A stretch of DNA of 64,000 nucleotides from Bigelowiella natans CCMP2755 (GCA_000320545.1 ADNK01000542.1:124001-188000); one strand, 5' to 3'; shown: positions 819 to 63,123, numbered from the stretch's first letter. Numbers and translations are program-made. The notes: a model not told the origin generated them from the letters alone.

Positions 819-1954
819 ATGTTGATCTCATTCTTGCTGTTATGGACGGCGGCTGCTCTATGCACCACGCTCAGAGGTAATCGAGCTGTTGGGGGAAGGT
901 GGCTTTCTCATCACCGCTGGCATGGTATTCCGGTTTCATGGAAAGTGCAGAAAAAAAGATCACGACGAGACAATACACATATCGCGAGAGTCTCCAGCAT
1001 CACATTATCACGGCTAAACTTTGCCCGGGGCATTCTTGCTCTTTCCCTGGAAGCTACGTGCATAGATGTGGAATTACCAACAAATGGAGGATATGTCAGC
1101 GAATGCATGAAAAATTCGACACAGAAATTCAAACTGAATGGGGGGGAGACGCTCACCCTTAAACAAGGATGGGACGGTCGTCCAGGTTTATACTGCTGCA
1201 GCGTGTGTTGTGCATGTGAGTGAGTGAGTGAGTGTGTGTCCTTACATGTATTTCAAAATATTTCTTAGATACTGCTAATAAGGTTAGCACTCCAATCTAC
1301 TTAGTGATCATGTGACTTCTCTCTACTTCTTCTCCTCCTTCTTCTCCTCATACGAATAATAACAATGATGATACCAAAGGTCACACAGGAACTTCAGTAT
1401 GGCAATCTGGAAAAGCACTTGCGGCATATATGGAAGATCTTGGCCCAGAGTTCTGGTCGGATAAAAAGGTAATTGAGCTTGGATGTGGGACTGGATTGGG
1501 TTCTTTGACAGCGCATTGGCTGGGAGCTGCAGAAGTTTTAGCCACGGATGGAAACGTGGATGTACTTGACCTTGCGGAAGAAAACATCAAGAGCAACAGA
1601 TGCCACAACAGAAGCCAATCATCAACAATCCGAACAGTGAACTTGAAGTGGGGAGGGTCGCTACCCTTGGAGCTACAAAAGGAATGGGATATCGTAATTG
1701 GAAGCGATTTAACATACAATGGGCAGGTTTGGATCCAACTAGCAGAAACTGTGGCTCAGCTTCTAGACTCAAATCCAGCATGTAAGTTTCTCTATTGCTC
1801 AGCCAAACATGCACAATTTTCGGCGGAATTGTCAGGTTTTCAAACTGTCATAGAATCTAAAGGGCTGAGATGGACAAACGAGACAACTTTAGTGCTTCCA
1901 GGGACTAAACAAAGTGCCTCCATAGCATGGATTGTACGATCAGACGTCATCTAA
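819..1954 (+). CDS. METTL21/family-16-type SAM-dependent (lysine) methyltransferase with N-terminal signal and transit-like leader
   Basis: join(819..1185,1380..1954) gives ..GRPGHTGTSVWQSG.., motif I VIELGCGTG, post-I VLATD, then LKWG and DIVIGSDLTY. Hydrophobic N-terminus MLISFLLLWTAAALC. Confidence 0.85.
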
Positions 1955-2834
1955 CCTAAGTAAACAATGGAATGATGGTTATACGAAGGTTTGTCAAGCT
2001 TTTGGACAATGTGTACAGGATACATTCATGCAGTAGCTCCGAACAAGCAGCTTATTTCATAACTACTTTAGCTAATGACCATAGACCACGCGTAGCGCCA
2101 GTCCATAATGCAACTAGTGAATCGAAGAACGCAACGCTAAGGTGTGCGGCTATAAACACCAAACATGGACAGTATCTCACTTAACAGTGATATTACTCGA
2201 TTAATTATTTTGCAGTATTGTTAGACTCGCGTGTCAGCTATCAGTCGTCTATTGGTAGCTCGAGCGTATGTAGTTAGAGTAGAAGCAGCAGCTGCTATTT
2301 CGTTCTGACTTGTATAGTGTGAGGTATGCATATGTGTCAGCATTTAATATATAGCTAGCTGCGGCTGTAGTAGCCGCGCAACACAACATAGCGTCGTATC
2401 TGTGCCATACATGCAATTGCAATGCTCTCCACCGCGCTAGCTATAGCTACTGCCTCGCTCCGATCCGTTATTGCCGGACGGTAGCACGCATTGATGCATG
2501 CATGTAGACAGTAAATAACGCCTATGATACGATCACAACTCCTTTCATCCCACGAGCTTAGAGCTTAAGCACTTCAATGTAAACGAGAAGGACATGTCCA
2601 CCCACTTCCTCCAATATGGGCTTGGCTTTGACTGGTATATGCCTAAACGCGTCACAATGCACATGCACTACAGATACAACGCATGTACGATATATACTGT
2701 GTCCATTGTTGTGGTAATATTTTGTGCCCAAAATATTTTACGTTGTGTTTGCTGGTGTGCACACATTGCAGTTCCAGCAAAGGAAGAGCTAGCGATATGA
2801 TCCCATGTATAGTAAGACAAAAGCTATGATATTT

Positions 2835-56392: not shown

Positions 56393-58311
56393 ATTTGAAT
56401 AATATCTCCCTAATATACTTCAGTGGTCAGAAGAAGCAAAAAAATACAATCAGAAACAGGTTCTACTATTAAAACATCATATCTTTCTGTCGAATTATGT
56501 TATGTTATGCAGCATCCATCCATCCATTATGTGGTCGTCATTGTCTTCTCTTTATGTCTCTTTTGCCTCTCTGTTATAAATAACCTTGAAGTCCTACAAT
56601 ATCCCTCAGGAAGAAATAATCCTCAAATCTAAGCTGTTATAAATAACCTTGAAGTCCTACAATATCCCTCAGGAAGAAATAATCCTCAAATCTAAGCTGC
56701 AACAACGTGCTTCAAAGGCTAGGTTATTATATATTCTTCAATGATTCACCTACATCATTATCATCACCATCATTATCATCATCATCATCATCATCATAGG
56801 AAGCGGCGGGAAGATAAAGAACATGTAAAGTTGGGTAAGCAAAGAGAGCAGCACTTCAAACCACTAGGTACACTTACTTGAAACACCGGCATACTCTCTC
56901 TGGGGTTGTCCAGTTTATCTTACGTCTATTTCTCTAGGAATGAGTGGAAAATTGTCCAAGATGAGCGAAGAAATATCAAATTCTTCAACGTAAGTATAAA
57001 TCACAAACTGCAATTCAAATTGTTAATTGTAGTTGTATAAAGCGCTCGTAGGTATCTGGAGGATCTGCAAGATGTTCAAAAATCAAGCAACAAAATCACG
57101 CATATCGACCAAGCACAGCATCCTGGATTCTTAAGTTCCCGCAGCAAAAATTTGCATATCGTAATTTTTACTTTAGCATTAAATGTTCTTCTTCCTCTTT
57201 GCCGTGTGTGTGTGTGTGTGTTGTGAAAAATCAATAACAATGCTATATTATTATCATCATATCCAGGAAACAAGATATGATGAAATGGGACTGGGAAAAT
57301 GTGTTGGTATGTTATACAATTGGTTGCAGCTGCTTCTCTGAATGATACGGCGAAGATTCTGTCTGGATGATGATAGCTTGGCACTTCTTAAATAGGAGTT
57401 CAAGCATGGCAAGCCGCCCCCCCCACTCCTCCGCCCACAGTACCACCGAAGAAAGATCGAGTCATTTTCACGGGATTTGGAACGTAGTTCTTATTAGAAG
57501 CCATAGATTGTTGCCTTAATCATGTACTTCATATTCAATATGAGCTTTCTCATTACAGCGTGGTGGACATTGATAAAGCTTTCCCAAAAAAAAAAAAGAC
57601 TCCGGAGGAAGAGGTTTTCTATAATTCCATATTTTGTATTATAGCATTGGATCTTACCAATGTTGTTTTTGCGTTAATATTCAGCTTGAAGTGATGCTAA
57701 GTCTTGCACTTAAAACTGCCACGGTATATTAGTGAGTATATTAGTAAGTGTGGCGTCTCGAATGTAAGTCGTATGAATTTATGTCTTGCTATTGGGTTGT
57801 TACCTTAGGCAAAGTTAGAAAATGTCGGTGTTCAATATCCCCCTCCTTTGCCACCGGTAACTCTCACTATACGGCAAAAAATGAAGAGGTCAGTCACATC
57901 AACAGCAAGCAGAGAGTGTCTAAATTATTTAATTATCTTGACTTTTTATTAGGCGAGTAAGAACTGAAGTCGAGCGCATGAAGGAGAAGATTCGCCAGAC
58001 AGAGGTAATAAACACATATTGATGATAATTATTAAAACTTCTAAGAACTCGTCATCTTTGACATTGCAGCTGAGGGAAAGATTGATAAAAAAAAGGGAAA
58101 AGAAGGCAAAAGCGGTATGCATCAGAAAGAAAATACTCCATGGAACATATGTGTGAAGTTGCATTTTTTTCCAATTTTGCAACAGGAGGAGAAATTGCAA
58201 CGATTGAGCGATGTCAGGCACAACAAATTGGTTGGTGAATTTCATTCGGTAGGAGGAGAGCTTCAGGTAGCACAACTTCGTCGCATTGATAGTAAACATT
58301 TAGGTGCGTGA
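53409..58311 (+). CDS. Hypothetical coiled-coil-rich protein with more than 20 small exons; start uncertain
   Basis: Many GT-AG-bounded E/K/R-rich mini-exons (EEAIDKGVSQRL.., EKDKERHELQKRKLQW.., APPTPPPTVPPKK..) ending ..IDSKHLGA* at 58311. Confidence 0.55.
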
Positions 58312-58680
58312 TTCCCACAATATGCACTCTTCATTAGAGTTTGTATTATGGTCGACTAAATCTTCGCATATCTTAATAAAAGTTTTGAAGCCATCAAAAA
58401 TAAGAGTAAAACTCCTTTGTCAATAAATGAAATGGAAGCCAAGCTACCAAGCACAGACAGTATGCCGCGCTCGTAGATCGCCGCAGTGCAAACACGCCGC
58501 TCATGTCCTTAAGACATGTGGACAAATACATATAAACAAAGGATACATCATTATAGACATCATGTAGATAGCTTCATGTGCTGCATTAAACTACTACATG
58601 CAGCTCGCACATGCTTGCGATTCGTCTCACTCGAAGGCGCGCTACACTAGCTTGGCGTTACACATGTGTGCATAGACTTA

Positions 58681-58795
58681 TGAGACGGATGTAATGGATT
58701 GATTAAATCTTTTGAATGGTCTAGTGGTCATCTGTCTAATGTAGCTATGTAATATAGCGGCTACAGTACTTATGTTGTGCCTGTTTGTGCATACT
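58681..58795 (+). repeat. Dispersed intergenic repeat family copy
   Basis: GAGACGGATGTAATGGATTGATTAAATCTTTTGAATGGT..GTAGCTATGTAATATAGCGGCTACAGTACTTATGTTGTGCCTGTTTG. Confidence 0.7.
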
Positions 58796-59303
58796 AGCAT
58801 AGCTTACTTCTAATGACGACGAGGTATTCGCAGTGTATCTATATCTGCAGCTGCATGATAGTGCAGTGCATCGCAATGTACATTTTACCCTTTCATCAAG
58901 ATAGGATCAACTAGTAGCGCTCATGATCTCATCTGTCGATTTGTGGCACATCAGGCGATGATTCAGGTTAAGAGAAACATCACAATAGCCGTTATGTGGG
59001 CGGGCTCGCATGTCTTGTAATGTGCACTTATGCTCAACAAGTGTACACTTGTTATGGGTTCTCATTTGCACGTACTGTTCATGAAGACTTAAGCGTAAAC
59101 ATCATGCGAGGGGCATAAGCAGTAGTGCACGCACATTATGATGTGCCAGTATTTTAAAGATTAATAGTTGATCAACATGGTCGAAATTCTTCGTGGGAAC
59201 AATGGAAACTTGGTATGAGTATATGATGTACAAAGCGAACATTATTGACAGACATGTGTGGTATCTCAAACTAAGTTACAGGTTGCGCTTTCACACTTCT
59301 CAA

Positions 59304-60643
59304 TTAGCCTTCTAGTGAAACAAAGCCAATTTCACTGCTTTCATCACAAGTACGAGCCTAAAAAGCCAACCATCAGCTCACATCTAAATGTATGTGGACA
59401 ATGATTACTTCCCATCTCTTGAATTTCCTTGACATCTTCGAGATTTTGTACTGGATCTTAAAGTTGGTGTGTCGGTCTATAAATATTTAAAAGTTAAAAT
59501 GTAAGGAATTATGAATTGCTCCTTGGGTTCATATTTAAGATAGGTTAAAGCCAGATTTCTGTCAAATTGTTCCAATCAGTGTGTTTTTGTTTAGGAGAAC
59601 CAACTATCTTTTTGTATCTTTTCCACCAACGGAACGATCACTTCTTCTGGACCCTCAAGCACTTGTCGAACCCTTTCAGATATGCATGTTGTCAACCAGA
59701 GGTGATAAATTCTCCTATTAACAAATTACACTCCAGTTTTGAGGAAAAGCCACATCATTCCGCCAATGGTTAGCAATTCATTTCTCGCACGTGCAAATGA
59801 AAGAATTGGCTCAACGTCTTCTGATTTCTTTAGCTTAGATGTGTACTCAATCTGCTAACATTAAAACAAACACCACCACTACGTTGATTGTCAAATTTTG
59901 TCAATGGGTTTTATTCGAGTTGTGGTTGAGCATGCCTGAAGAATCTGGGGAGATGATGCACAAGTTTTCTTCAAATCAAGCTCAGAAGTGACGACGAGAG
60001 TCATGACTCCCCACCTTTAGAAATGAGGGGTGTAGAGGGTAGGGGAAATTTTGGAGTTGACACCAGAATCAACTTCATTATTTTGGTTGTTGCTTATTAC
60101 TTTTGAAATGAGCGCTGATCCACAAACTTTCTTTCTTCAACTACGATATCTGTGTGTCTATTGTCAAGACGAATTTTCTCGAATAAAACTAATACGTCTT
60201 TATATTTCCCCTCTAGAGTCTGCTTTACCTAATATAATATAAGGTACGGGAATAGTGTGTACAGTGAAGGTATTTACATGATGAAATATGTAGTACCCTT
60301 TTTTGTTGCAGCTCAACCCAAAGCATACCCCCAATCTGGAATTTCCGGATTATTCCTCTGTGCTTGAGAGATTATCTTATTTATCTCATCCGATGCGATT
60401 TGTTTCATTCTTAGGTTTTAGAGGAAAGTGGTCAGTGGTTCATCATCTATACATCAAATGACCACCAAGTGACATGGATAATTGTACCTTGACGTGTAGG
60501 TCAGCCTGAAAAGCTTTTGATCCACATTATTGTCTTCTTGTCCTTGCATGTCTTGACAAAGGAGGAAAAGATGATTTAGACTTTCATTTATGATTACTAT
60601 CAAATTTCTCACCACCTGTCTGTGAAGAAAGGTGCATATCCAT
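59304..60643 (-). CDS. Tandem BLUF-domain (blue-light FAD sensor) protein, about 9 exons, with a 1-nt frameshift in BLUF1
   Basis: BLUF1: LFRLTYTSR..AQRNNP/KFQIGGMLW..VKQTLEG..LFEKIRLDNRHTDI..RSFQKW. BLUF2: LQIEYTSK..ARARNELLTIGGMMW..VRQVLEGP..KIQKDNRHTNF..RKFKRW. Signature Tyr, Asn, Gln-x-LEG, DxRH and Trp are present in both. Confidence 0.85.
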
Positions 60644-60862
60644 CAATCTAGTCGGAGTCCTTGTTGCAACACTTCGGAAAGGAGAATGACTCCATTGTTC
60701 TGCTGCACCACTTCTCCTTGGTTCCTGCGAGTATCTGTGTTCGTCCTCCTCCGAATTGCAGAAAATGAAGAAATGCAGGCTATTTCTTTACTTGAGACAT
60801 CATTTTTATTATCAATTTGTTTTCAGCCGATATCTTTTCCGTGTGGCTGTGGCAGTTAATAG

Positions 60863-60948
60863 CATGTCGCAGGATAAAAACGCATTGTTGGAAACATGTC
60901 GCAGGATAAAAACGCATTGTTGGAAACATGTCGCAGGATAAAAACGCA
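60863..60948. repeat. About 2.7 x 32-bp tandem repeat in the BLUF/CDK8 divergent promoter
   Basis: CATGTCGCAGGATAAAAACGCATTGTTGGAAA at 60863, 60895 and 60927 (partial). Confidence 0.9.
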
Positions 60949-61020
60949 TCGTAGTAGAACCGAGAACGCACTAGCCCCGCCCCGCTTAAGGGCCGTCCGT
61001 TAACAGGTGGCATAGCAGCG

Positions 61021-62499
61021 ATGAGTACAGCTATTGACCCAAAGCATCAGGTCTCAAGGGAATTACTCGAATCCTTTTCGCTTCAAGGGATAATTGGTAA
61101 TGTAGTCGCATCGTCGTTTCATACACGTACAACTACATTTGTTCGGTAGAGAGCATGCGACTGGAACCCTCGATGATGCGGTCAATCGACTCTACCTTCA
61201 AACCACATAATGAAATTTATTGGTTCAGGTGAAGGAGCATACGGTGTAGTGTATAAGGGAGAATGCAAAAAGACCAAAGAAGTTGTTGCAATCAAATCGA
61301 TGAAGCCTCCACGAGAAGGTTGTCTCATCTCTTTACTTCTTTACTACTACGATGGTGCTAAATGGTGCTACTAACTACTGCTACTAATCCTAGAATTGTT
61401 ATCAATTTCTTGTTTTATTTCTTGCTGTTGCAAAAAGGTTTTGGGATTCCGATGGATGCCTACAGGGAGATTAAAATACTGAAAGAGCTCCAACACAAAA
61501 ACATAGTACGCCTCATAAGGTCATTCATTCTTTACTATTTGGTCGAACAAAATACTGAAAGAGCTCCAACACAAAAACATAGTACGCCTCATAAGGTCAC
61601 TCATTCTTCACTATTTGGTCGAACAACAGAAACTTAGCTTACCTCACAGTTGTCAACGATATTAGTCACTAGATGCTCGATCAAACAATGGTATTTAGTG
61701 ATATTTTTTTGATATAGAGCTATCATGGGGGCTGATGATACTACTACTACAACTACTACCGGAAAATCTGAAAGTAGTGTTGGAAAAGCGAGAACCGGCT
61801 TGAATCTCACCGTAGCCTTGGTTTACAGCTACGCAGAGCACGACTTATCGCAAATTATTCGGCACCAACTGGTTTGAAAAGACTGCAGCATTTGAATCAA
61901 AACTACTTTTGATTTACTTTTGATTTCTTTTTTTTAAGAAAATTCATGTTGGTTATATTAGCAAGCCAAGCGGCCATTTCCAAAAAGGATGATTAAGAGT
62001 TTCATCTTTCAGGTAGGATGATAATATTTCTTTGGTGGTTTGAATTGCGCATTTCAGTACCAAATTATCTTTCATCAGTTACAACTACTCCTAACTTAAA
62101 ATTATAAATTTGCTCCTCTTATTCTTCATTTTGTTGTTGTTTATTTAGATTTTGAAAGGGCTCGACTATCTTCACCAAAATTGGGTCATGCATCGAGGTA
62201 CTAGTAGTAGTAGTAGTAGTAGTAGTAGTAGCAGTAGTCATGCTTCGAGGTACTAGTAGTAGTAGTAGTAGTAGTAATAGTAGTAGTAGTGCGTGCATGA
62301 GTTGGTTAGGTAGTTAATTAGTTCTGCTGCTAACATTTTCTTGTCCTGTAATTGATGATGATACACGTTCTCATCATTCTCACATCTTTATAATAAATAA
62401 ATAAATTAGATATAAAACCCGCCAATATTCTGGTGATGGGTCAAAGACGGGAAGAGGGTTGTGTCAAGATAGCAGATTTTGGTCTCGCGCGGATTTTCC

Positions 62500-62542
<43 letters not shown>

Positions 62543-62736
62543 ATTATTCAGCATTATTTTTATCATGACGGTCACTAATAAAATGATAGAAATTAGGCGA
62601 TGAGTTGAAGAAGGTGAAATAATAAAATATTAATAACTTGGGTAATGGACAAATAGGCGCCGTTGCGAAAGCTTTCCTATGATGGAGACGTAGTAACAAT
62701 CTGGTACAGGGCGCCTGAGCTATTGCTTGGATCGCA

Positions 62737-62771
<35 letters not shown>

Positions 62772-63092
62772 TAAAATACCGGCCTTTTATTTTCAAAATA
62801 TTGTGATCTACACTAAGTCGCTACTTGTTCGTTGCTATAGCATACTCTCTATAGCATGCTTTCTTGCCGTTTTCGAACAAACCTTGCATAGCCATGACAC
62901 TCACCATTATCGTCATCATTATTTTGAGCAAGTAATATCATCAAGCATAAGATCAACATAATCTGGGTAGTAGTACTGGCCATCATCATCATCATCATCA
63001 TTATCATCATCATCATCATCAGGCACTATACCCCCGTCATTGATATCTGGTCTGTTGGCTGCATTATGGGGGAATTAATGAAGGTAAGCTAG

Positions 63093-63123
<31 letters not shown>

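Follow-up and report, generated by a model that had tools for sequence, protein, structure and literature searches.

The finding of a series of small minus-strand exons that spell out two consecutive BLUF domains and little else in the genome of Bigelowiella natans, the model chlorarachniophyte, raises the question of whether this alga makes a eukaryotic blue-light sensor devoid of any effector. Such a gene, hidden from gene callers, was proposed in a preliminary description of the window, i.e., the whole stretch of 64,000 nucleotides of strain CCMP2755 that was analysed, which is eukaryotic DNA with a G+C content of about 40% and many microsatellites. Our analyses lead to a more nuanced answer. 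With a probability of roughly 0.6, we regard the locus as a copy, still transcribed but inactivated not long ago, of a conserved tandem-BLUF gene: the reading frame is disrupted relative to that of intact orthologues, no intact copy occurs elsewhere in the B. natans genome, and the B. natans copy most likely makes no working photoreceptor, being either a young unitary pseudogene or a null allele.

That the exons exist is not in doubt. Read mapping over positions 57001-61400 brought together two transcript assemblies (X15 and X16), raw stranded RNA reads (X23) and an independent DNA run (X2), and seven minus-strand introns of the gene were recovered as joints in the contigs of X15 and X16, among the best-supported joints listed (Table 1). 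One of them (59852-59935) is a GC..AG intron, whose ends read CT..GC on the plus strand and which is supported by a transcript joint, and the junction of exons 4 and 5 (donor caa-aa/gt, the slash marking the exon boundary here and below) is in frame and reads QKWGVM according to both indexing and the observed joint. A public cDNA contig of 1073 nt (L010) is 100% identical to the window across 60739-59106, and contigs of X15 and X16 extend to 59073, so that the 3' UTR runs from the stop at 59304-59306 to about 59073. The raw RNA reads over the gene have the orientation opposite to those of the plus-strand neighbour, from which it follows that the RNA derives from the minus strand. Three introns (59477-59600, 59852-59935, and 60015-60100) are also kept in contigs whose depths are near those of the spliced forms, and the transcript depth amounts to about one quarter of that of a highly expressed neighbour despite the early stops described below. 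The small exons are a real, transcribed gene. No further exons of this gene were found, the transcript ends being followed by a gap without any RNA (zero depth across 58765-59058) and by a convergent neighbour; since transcript ends and flanking genes bound the gene on both sides, there is no room for an effector exon. Neither does the BLUF chain contain a cyclase domain, as judged from a transcript that covers 59073-60739 only and from complete orthologues with BLUF matches alone, and the claim that no cyclase or other effector is encoded downstream is borne out. It is worthy to note that a uORF of 15 codons (60648-60695, minus strand) in the 5' UTR ends 4 nt ahead of the main ATG.

Table 1. 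Coordinates of the tandem-BLUF gene of B. natans, counted from the first letter of the window
Feature	Coordinates	Strand	Basis
Transcribed unit, tandem-BLUF gene, eight exons	59073-60739	minus	cDNA contig, transcript contigs, stranded RNA reads
Exon 1: 5' UTR, 15-codon uORF, start ATG at 60641-60643	60616-60739	minus	joint 60551/60616; L010
Exon 2: N-terminal tail and BLUF1 beta1 (KLFRLTYTS, photocycle Tyr)	60488-60551	minus	joints, translation, orthologue alignment
Exon 3: BLUF1 helix 1 with RNN (frame A), then IGGMLW beta strand (frame B)	60297-60409	minus	RNA contigs, L010, DNA run X2
Extra base (att-c-cag), frame-breaking	60338-60339	minus	nucleotide alignment with L011 (1-nt gap in L011)
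ATG of ORF B (MLWVE...)	60324-60326	minus	start of P0001, P0015, P0017
TGA ending ORF A	60313-60315	minus	translation; gene caller on L010 closes first gene here
Exon 4: BLUF1 beta3-helix2-beta4 (QTLEG, DNRH)	60101-60228	minus	Pfam BLUF 35.8 bits; joints
Exon 5: BLUF1 beta5 (WGVMTLVV) and linker	59936-60014	minus	joint 59851/59936
Exon 6: BLUF2 beta1-helix1-beta2 (IEYTS, RNE, IGGMMW)	59730-59851	minus	Pfam BLUF 13.3 bits; joints
Exon 7 as observed: BLUF2 beta3-helix2 (VRQVLEG ... KIQKD)	59601-59672	minus	joint 59476/59601 in X15, X16; L010
Exon 8a: would-be BLUF2 beta4-beta5 (NRH ... KRWE), out of frame in observed mRNAs	59409-59476	minus	conserved in orthologues (D-x-RH ... WEART)
Last intron, 51 nt, GT..AG, in phase	59358-59408	minus	retained in L010; absent from relative's cDNA
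Would-be last coding piece ARTCDESSEIGFVSLEG, stop at 59304-59306	59304-59357	minus	aligns with C-termini of 4/4 intact orthologues
Introns	60552-60615, 60410-60487, 60229-60296, 60015-60100, 59852-59935, 59673-59729, 59477-59600	minus	RNA contigs
Exons of L010	60739-60616, 60551-60488, 60409-60297, 60228-60101, 60014-59936, 59851-59730, 59672-59601, 59476-59106	minus	public cDNA contig

The assignment of these exons to the BLUF family is equally firm. Stop-to-stop pieces of the minus strand hold KLFRLTYTS, QAQRNN, IGGMLW, QTLEG, and DNRH, then IEYTS, IGGMMW, VRQVLEG, and DRH. When the locus was queried by single exons with the Pfam profile PF04940 (cut-off 25 bits), the profile recommended in the preliminary description, positions 60100-60228 exceeded the cut-off with 35.8 bits (E 8.6e-9), 59594-59725 reached 19.3 bits and 59729-59854 reached 13.3 bits over profile positions 4-40. 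A six-frame BLUF scan of the whole 91.4-Mb genome returned this locus and four other places; exon matches and genome scan together place the BLUF signal far above chance. To compare the locus with its relatives, we built a conceptual product with X at the frame break, the productive donor in use and the last intron spliced, which amounts to 240 aa plus X. The motifs announced for the two domains are all present in this translation, namely Tyr (LTYTS, IEYTS), Asn, Gln (QTLEG, QVLEG) and DNRH twice, and Tyr, Asn, Gln, and Trp are found in both domains of all orthologues as well. The Met expected two residues after Trp is indeed out of place (WGVM, WEA), and this is a trait of the whole family, in which Met stands at W+3 in BLUF1 (W-x-x-M) and is absent from BLUF2 (WEART). 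At a separate locus (L001, G000:C3421:10099-13380), a 402-aa open frame (1036-2241, plus strand) encodes one full BLUF domain (72.7 bits) flanked by long low-complexity Ser/Gly/Thr-rich stretches and shares the IGGML motif with the tandem-BLUF gene; it is a further member of the B. natans BLUF repertoire.

The exons do not, however, form the single open frame that was first drawn, and no complete BLUF domain lies within one open frame of the mRNAs observed at the B. natans locus, owing to interruptions near 60339 and at 59600. The former resides in exon 3, which reads RMKQIASDEINKIISQAQRNNPEI in the frame of the ATG at 60643 and QIGGMLWVELQQKR in the next frame. Compared with the intact cDNA L011 of a closer relative, the B. 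natans sequence is longer by exactly one base near 60339, and orthologues run unbroken across the site (NNPR-I/L/Q-E/Q-I/V-GG), whereas the frame opened at 60643 (ORF A) stops after 62 aa, right behind PDWGYALG. One-base frame breaks being a classic assembly error, the gene might be intact as first drawn and the break a sequencing or assembly artefact. We find this hardly credible. Exon 3 is uninterrupted and free of indels between the genome, the independent DNA run of 2025 (X2), the two Illumina transcript assemblies (X15 and X16) and the separate public cDNA contig (L010), all of which share the base, so that it is not an assembly error; besides, independent gene callers all begin at MLWVE. 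A rescue of the frame by splicing was considered and rejected, for GT is missing from the 5' part of the exon, use of any GC candidate would remove the Asn motif, and every RNA contig runs through the exon without interruption.

The second interruption concerns the splice donor at the end of exon 7. Among the best-supported joints listed, the intron starts at 59600 (gttg/gttctc) in X15, X16, and L010, while the conserved, productive donor would start it at 59604 (gat a/gttggt), just before the x of DxRH. Use of the 59600 donor adds 4 nt, which are absent from the end of exon 7 in the cDNA L011, and creates a TGA across the junction after KIQKDS; retention of the intron before the BLUF2 DNRH likewise yields a stop ahead of DxRH. 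The two donors, 59600 and 59604, both score poorly (0.7 and 1.7 bits against 3-10 bits for 14 other local donors), and the Amorphochlora donor of the KD/xRH intron reads GTACAA. To judge from these sequences, the 5' splice site before the BLUF2 DxRH has decayed, and a minor isoform may use the productive donor at 59604. As for the last intron (59358-59408), its proposal has proven right insofar as it is conserved and spliced in relatives, Amorphochlora having an intron at the same WE/ART position, but L010 retains it; in both X15 and X16 the shared-exon contigs terminate precisely at 59357, which is what a splice branch would produce. The cDNA evidence called for at the outset thus cuts both ways: L010 supplies the exon layout and, at the same time, carries both the frame break and the 59600 donor.

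What, then, does the locus encode? Exon 4, searched against 1.84 billion representative proteins, gave seven matches, the top one (P0001, 93 aa, 100% identical) being jgi/Bigna1/129788 (aug1.9_g4496), listed in EukProt under Bigelowiella natans. This JGI model starts at MLWVE, covers the C-terminal half of BLUF1 and enters a retained intron; the gene was therefore not entirely hidden, although the model misses the rest of it as well as the frame break. P0015 (143 aa, MLWVE...KIQKDS) corresponds to ORF B, P0017 (146 aa) retains the intron and ends in ...KDSWFS, and P0016 is partial; all four public proteins are consistent with the lesions. A word search with P0010, the intact protein encoded on L011, would have detected a full-length B. 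natans product and found none. No encoding nucleotide record was found for P0001 or P0003, and when metagenomes, with records near this genome withheld, were scanned with P0015, all BLUF loci recovered were distant (44% identity or less) and for the most part bacterial. With respect to content, ORF A comprises BLUF1 beta1, helix 1 and beta2 and scores 17.3 bits, under the cut-off, and ORF B comprises BLUF1 beta3-beta5 and BLUF2 beta1-helix 2.

It is tempting to ask whether such fragments are functional, either because the 143-aa ORF B acts as a permuted or complemented BLUF or as a regulator, or because the RNA has a non-coding role. ORF B does hold Tyr, Asn, and Gln of BLUF2 together with DNRH and Trp/Met of BLUF1, its Pfam BLUF match reaches 76.4 bits in two partial stretches, and the mRNA is abundant. 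Nevertheless, this idea seems unlikely to us: the ORF B structure model is nowhere confident (mean pLDDT 42.5 with a maximum not exceeding 70, whereas the mean for the intact P0010 was 77.3 at similar alignment depth), which leaves a permuted or complemented BLUF unsupported; ORF B is placed behind the uORF at 60648-60695, the 62-codon ORF A and several upstream ATGs; and the arrangement is found in no relative.

The relatives themselves tell a different story. Intact tandem BLUF proteins, which the preliminary description suggested looking for in algal transcriptomes, occur in Lotharella globosa (P0011, 252 aa, CAMPEP_0167777558, MMETSP0111), in Amorphochlora amoebiformis (P0014, 260 aa, GAB5366113.1) and among other cDNAs (P0010, 252 aa, on L011 of the closer relative; P0002, P0008, and P0009, 238-251 aa). 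These proteins of 238-260 aa each show two full-length BLUF matches, 117-125 bits in total, and no other domain; the complete ones end about 17 aa past BLUF2. In the model of P0010, the only intact orthologue modelled, two BLUF folds are seen (mean pLDDT 77.3), and Foldseek relates its domains to TePixD, Slr1694, and AppA at 1.0-1.4 Å rmsd and 28-34% identity. Across genera, QRSF-x-x-W-x-x-MTLVVT marks domain 1 while LQ-x-EYTS and WEART mark domain 2, and since these domain-specific motifs are kept, the duplication of the BLUF domain is older than the divergence of the genera. The B. natans locus is orthologous to this family, as seen from the end-to-end alignment, the family-specific motifs and the shared intron positions (KD/xRH and WE/ART in both the Amorphochlora genome and B. 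natans); the proposed start (ATG 60643) and stop (59304-59306) fall where the intact orthologues begin and end. Taken together, these sequences point to a conserved, predicted protein of ~240 aa that chlorarachniophytes hold, made of two BLUF domains and short ends without any effector. The notion of an effector-less eukaryotic tandem BLUF is accordingly upheld for the family and fails for B. natans, whose observed mRNAs encode the 62- and 143-aa fragments only. We found no paper in the literature that describes the tandem-BLUF family or links BLUF to Bigelowiella, chlorarachniophytes, or Rhizaria. Two further effector-less multi-BLUF proteins (P0004 and P0007) came to light, one has three BLUF domains in 503 aa, and the other, a tandem BLUF of 254 aa, begins with MGGILSSC, likely an acylation signal, and ends in CCCCY.

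The comparison with these orthologues also informs on the age of the damage. The conceptual B. natans protein can be aligned over its full length with four intact orthologues, to which it is 50-61% identical (they are 43-70% identical among themselves), keeps 74 of the 74 invariant columns and shows eight unique changes at otherwise invariant sites, mostly conservative, when the intact Amorphochlora protein shows 18. Relative to L011, pN is 0.23 before, 0.22 between and 0.27 after the lesions; synonymous sites are saturated (pS 0.73-0.84), which makes dN/dS unusable. The conservation of the conceptual protein equals that of the intact relatives, with no excess of amino-acid change, so that among losses only a young one fits. 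Nothing points to long neutral decay; the gene would have been inactivated recently, unless selection on its sequence continues. A close paralogue was not found in the genome; the next-best places being only about 40% identical, there is no close copy able to compensate for the loss.

Alternatively, a full-length protein could be made by recoding, the ribosome shifting by +1 either close to position 60339 or where ORF A terminates (GGU-UGA-G), combined with the minor 59604 isoform and splicing of the last intron. Since the overlap of ORF A with ORF B measures 14 nt, a +1 shift anywhere within 58 nt would fuse the two frames; residues invariant in the family persist before as well as after the break, no decay being evident, and expression of the transcript is good. 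The protein would have to be rescued twice, independently, though, and neither the closest relative nor three further orthologues have the break, which therefore does not represent a conserved recoding site; the sequence there contains no known +1 slippery motif, and the product of the productive donor is absent from the databases searched. We consider such recoding very unlikely. The same slim odds apply to the more ambitious proposal built upon it, in which an undescribed chlorarachniophyte class of stand-alone eukaryotic photoreceptors, with two BLUF domains, the second lacking the signalling Met, and a terminal WEART tail, would include a B. natans version still made by +1 recoding and the minor isoform; if true, the locus would represent a new type of sensor and, at the same time, an instance of recoding in a rhizarian alga.

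Another way to account for damage of so young an age is that the lesions arose only within the strain or lineage kept in culture, the sensor having been lost, for example, over decades of culture, and that wild B. natans is intact. Words sampled over 1.6 kb of intron-rich DNA were present at 100% in 14 of 14 DNA runs, which suggests a single lineage; all DNA and RNA data may come from one cultured lineage, and marine metatranscriptomes contain parts of the stretch. On the other hand, MLWVE-start products come from at least two MMETSP transcript sets, and two lesions exceed a single culture mutation. A loss confined to culture is thus a possibility that deserves to be kept in mind, albeit a minority one.

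Our preferred reading, a recent inactivation of an otherwise conserved gene, can be put in mechanistic terms as follows. The locus would be the B. natans orthologue of a chlorarachniophyte-wide gene for a soluble protein of ~240 aa with two BLUF domains only. By what is known of the BLUF family, each domain of the intact protein in relatives would bind flavin, light would shift the hydrogen-bond network of Tyr, Gln, and flavin, and the change would be relayed via beta5 and the conserved C-terminal WEART tail to a partner. In B. natans, the one-base insertion near 60339 would cut the first half of BLUF1, with Tyr and Asn, off from the rest, and degeneration of the 5' splice site before the BLUF2 DxRH strand would divert splicing to a donor 4 nt downstream or leave the intron in place, either way leading to a stop. 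The resulting mRNAs would encode fragments of 62 aa and 143 aa, neither of which includes a complete BLUF domain.

PixD and BlrB are short bacterial BLUF proteins that signal via partners, and by analogy the chlorarachniophyte family would work most like them. The likeness to PixD/Slr1694, TePixD/Tll0078, and BlrB resides in the BLUF fold, the photocycle residues and the lack of an enzymatic effector, and each domain of the P0010 model superposes on 1x0p, 8i98, and 2hfo over 91-100 residues at 1.0-1.4 Å and 31-34% identity. The bacterial proteins differ in having one BLUF domain followed by C-terminal helices and in being oligomeric, whereas the family described here has two domains, an eukaryotic intron-rich gene and a 17-aa tail after beta5, and its Met stands one place further on after Trp in BLUF1 and is replaced in BLUF2 (W-E-A). 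Among eukaryotes, the photoactivated cyclase PAC of Euglena, alpha and beta, also has two BLUF domains per chain (PMC2781859), but a class III cyclase follows each of them, and the tandem-BLUF family is free of cyclase. The view that stand-alone BLUF proteins signalling through partners are purely bacterial is outdated, since DYBLUP/MOT7 of animals and Chlamydomonas is a eukaryotic, dynein-associated and partner-binding BLUF protein without enzyme domain that acts on dynein (PMC7909887). DYBLUP/MOT7 has a single BLUF in a larger axonemal protein and its flavin binding is called weak (PMC7909887); our comparison with it is by description and implies no orthology. A review of algal photoreceptors from 2025 deals with BLUF proteins in general terms only (PMC12558739). 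The intact orthologues P0011, P0014, P0010, and P0008 have the same two domains and similar length and, unlike the B. natans locus, open frames that are intact.

The value for photobiology and optogenetics therefore lies with the family and not with the B. natans copy: as a compact, effector-less tandem BLUF of ~240 aa found across chlorarachniophyte genera and endowed with an unusual beta5 chemistry, it would best be approached through the intact Lotharella and Amorphochlora proteins, which are the ones for expression work. Cloning from the sequenced B. natans strain would give a non-functional sequence; the reference genome carries this BLUF gene, one of several, in broken form, and the public model is a fragment. 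In its own right, the locus offers a clean case of very young, still-expressed gene loss, in which splice-site decay sits beside a frame break.

The surroundings of the gene deserve a few words. A gap of ~230 nt separates it from a divergent CDK-like gene, the 5' UTR of which starts about 60967; this gap contains a perfect 32-nt tandem repeat of 2.7 copies (60863-60949), which interrupts the DNA contigs of X2 and may serve both genes as a promoter element. The CDK-like kinase gene itself (61210-63100, plus strand) has introns full of tri- and dinucleotide microsatellites such as (GTT)n, (TAT)n, and (TG)n. On the other side lies the convergent, highly expressed nine-exon gene (57043-58723, plus strand), with a poly(A) site near 58712 and a spliced ORF of at least 213 aa that is lysine-rich (KKREKKAKAEEK) and proline-rich. 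At its 3' end and poly(A) site, a piece of ~34 nt (58679-58712) has a DNA word depth of 850-1175 against 79 around it and many loose ends in RNA and DNA runs, and the copies more often carry the G>A letter at 58697; this piece looks like a short, highly dispersed repeat.
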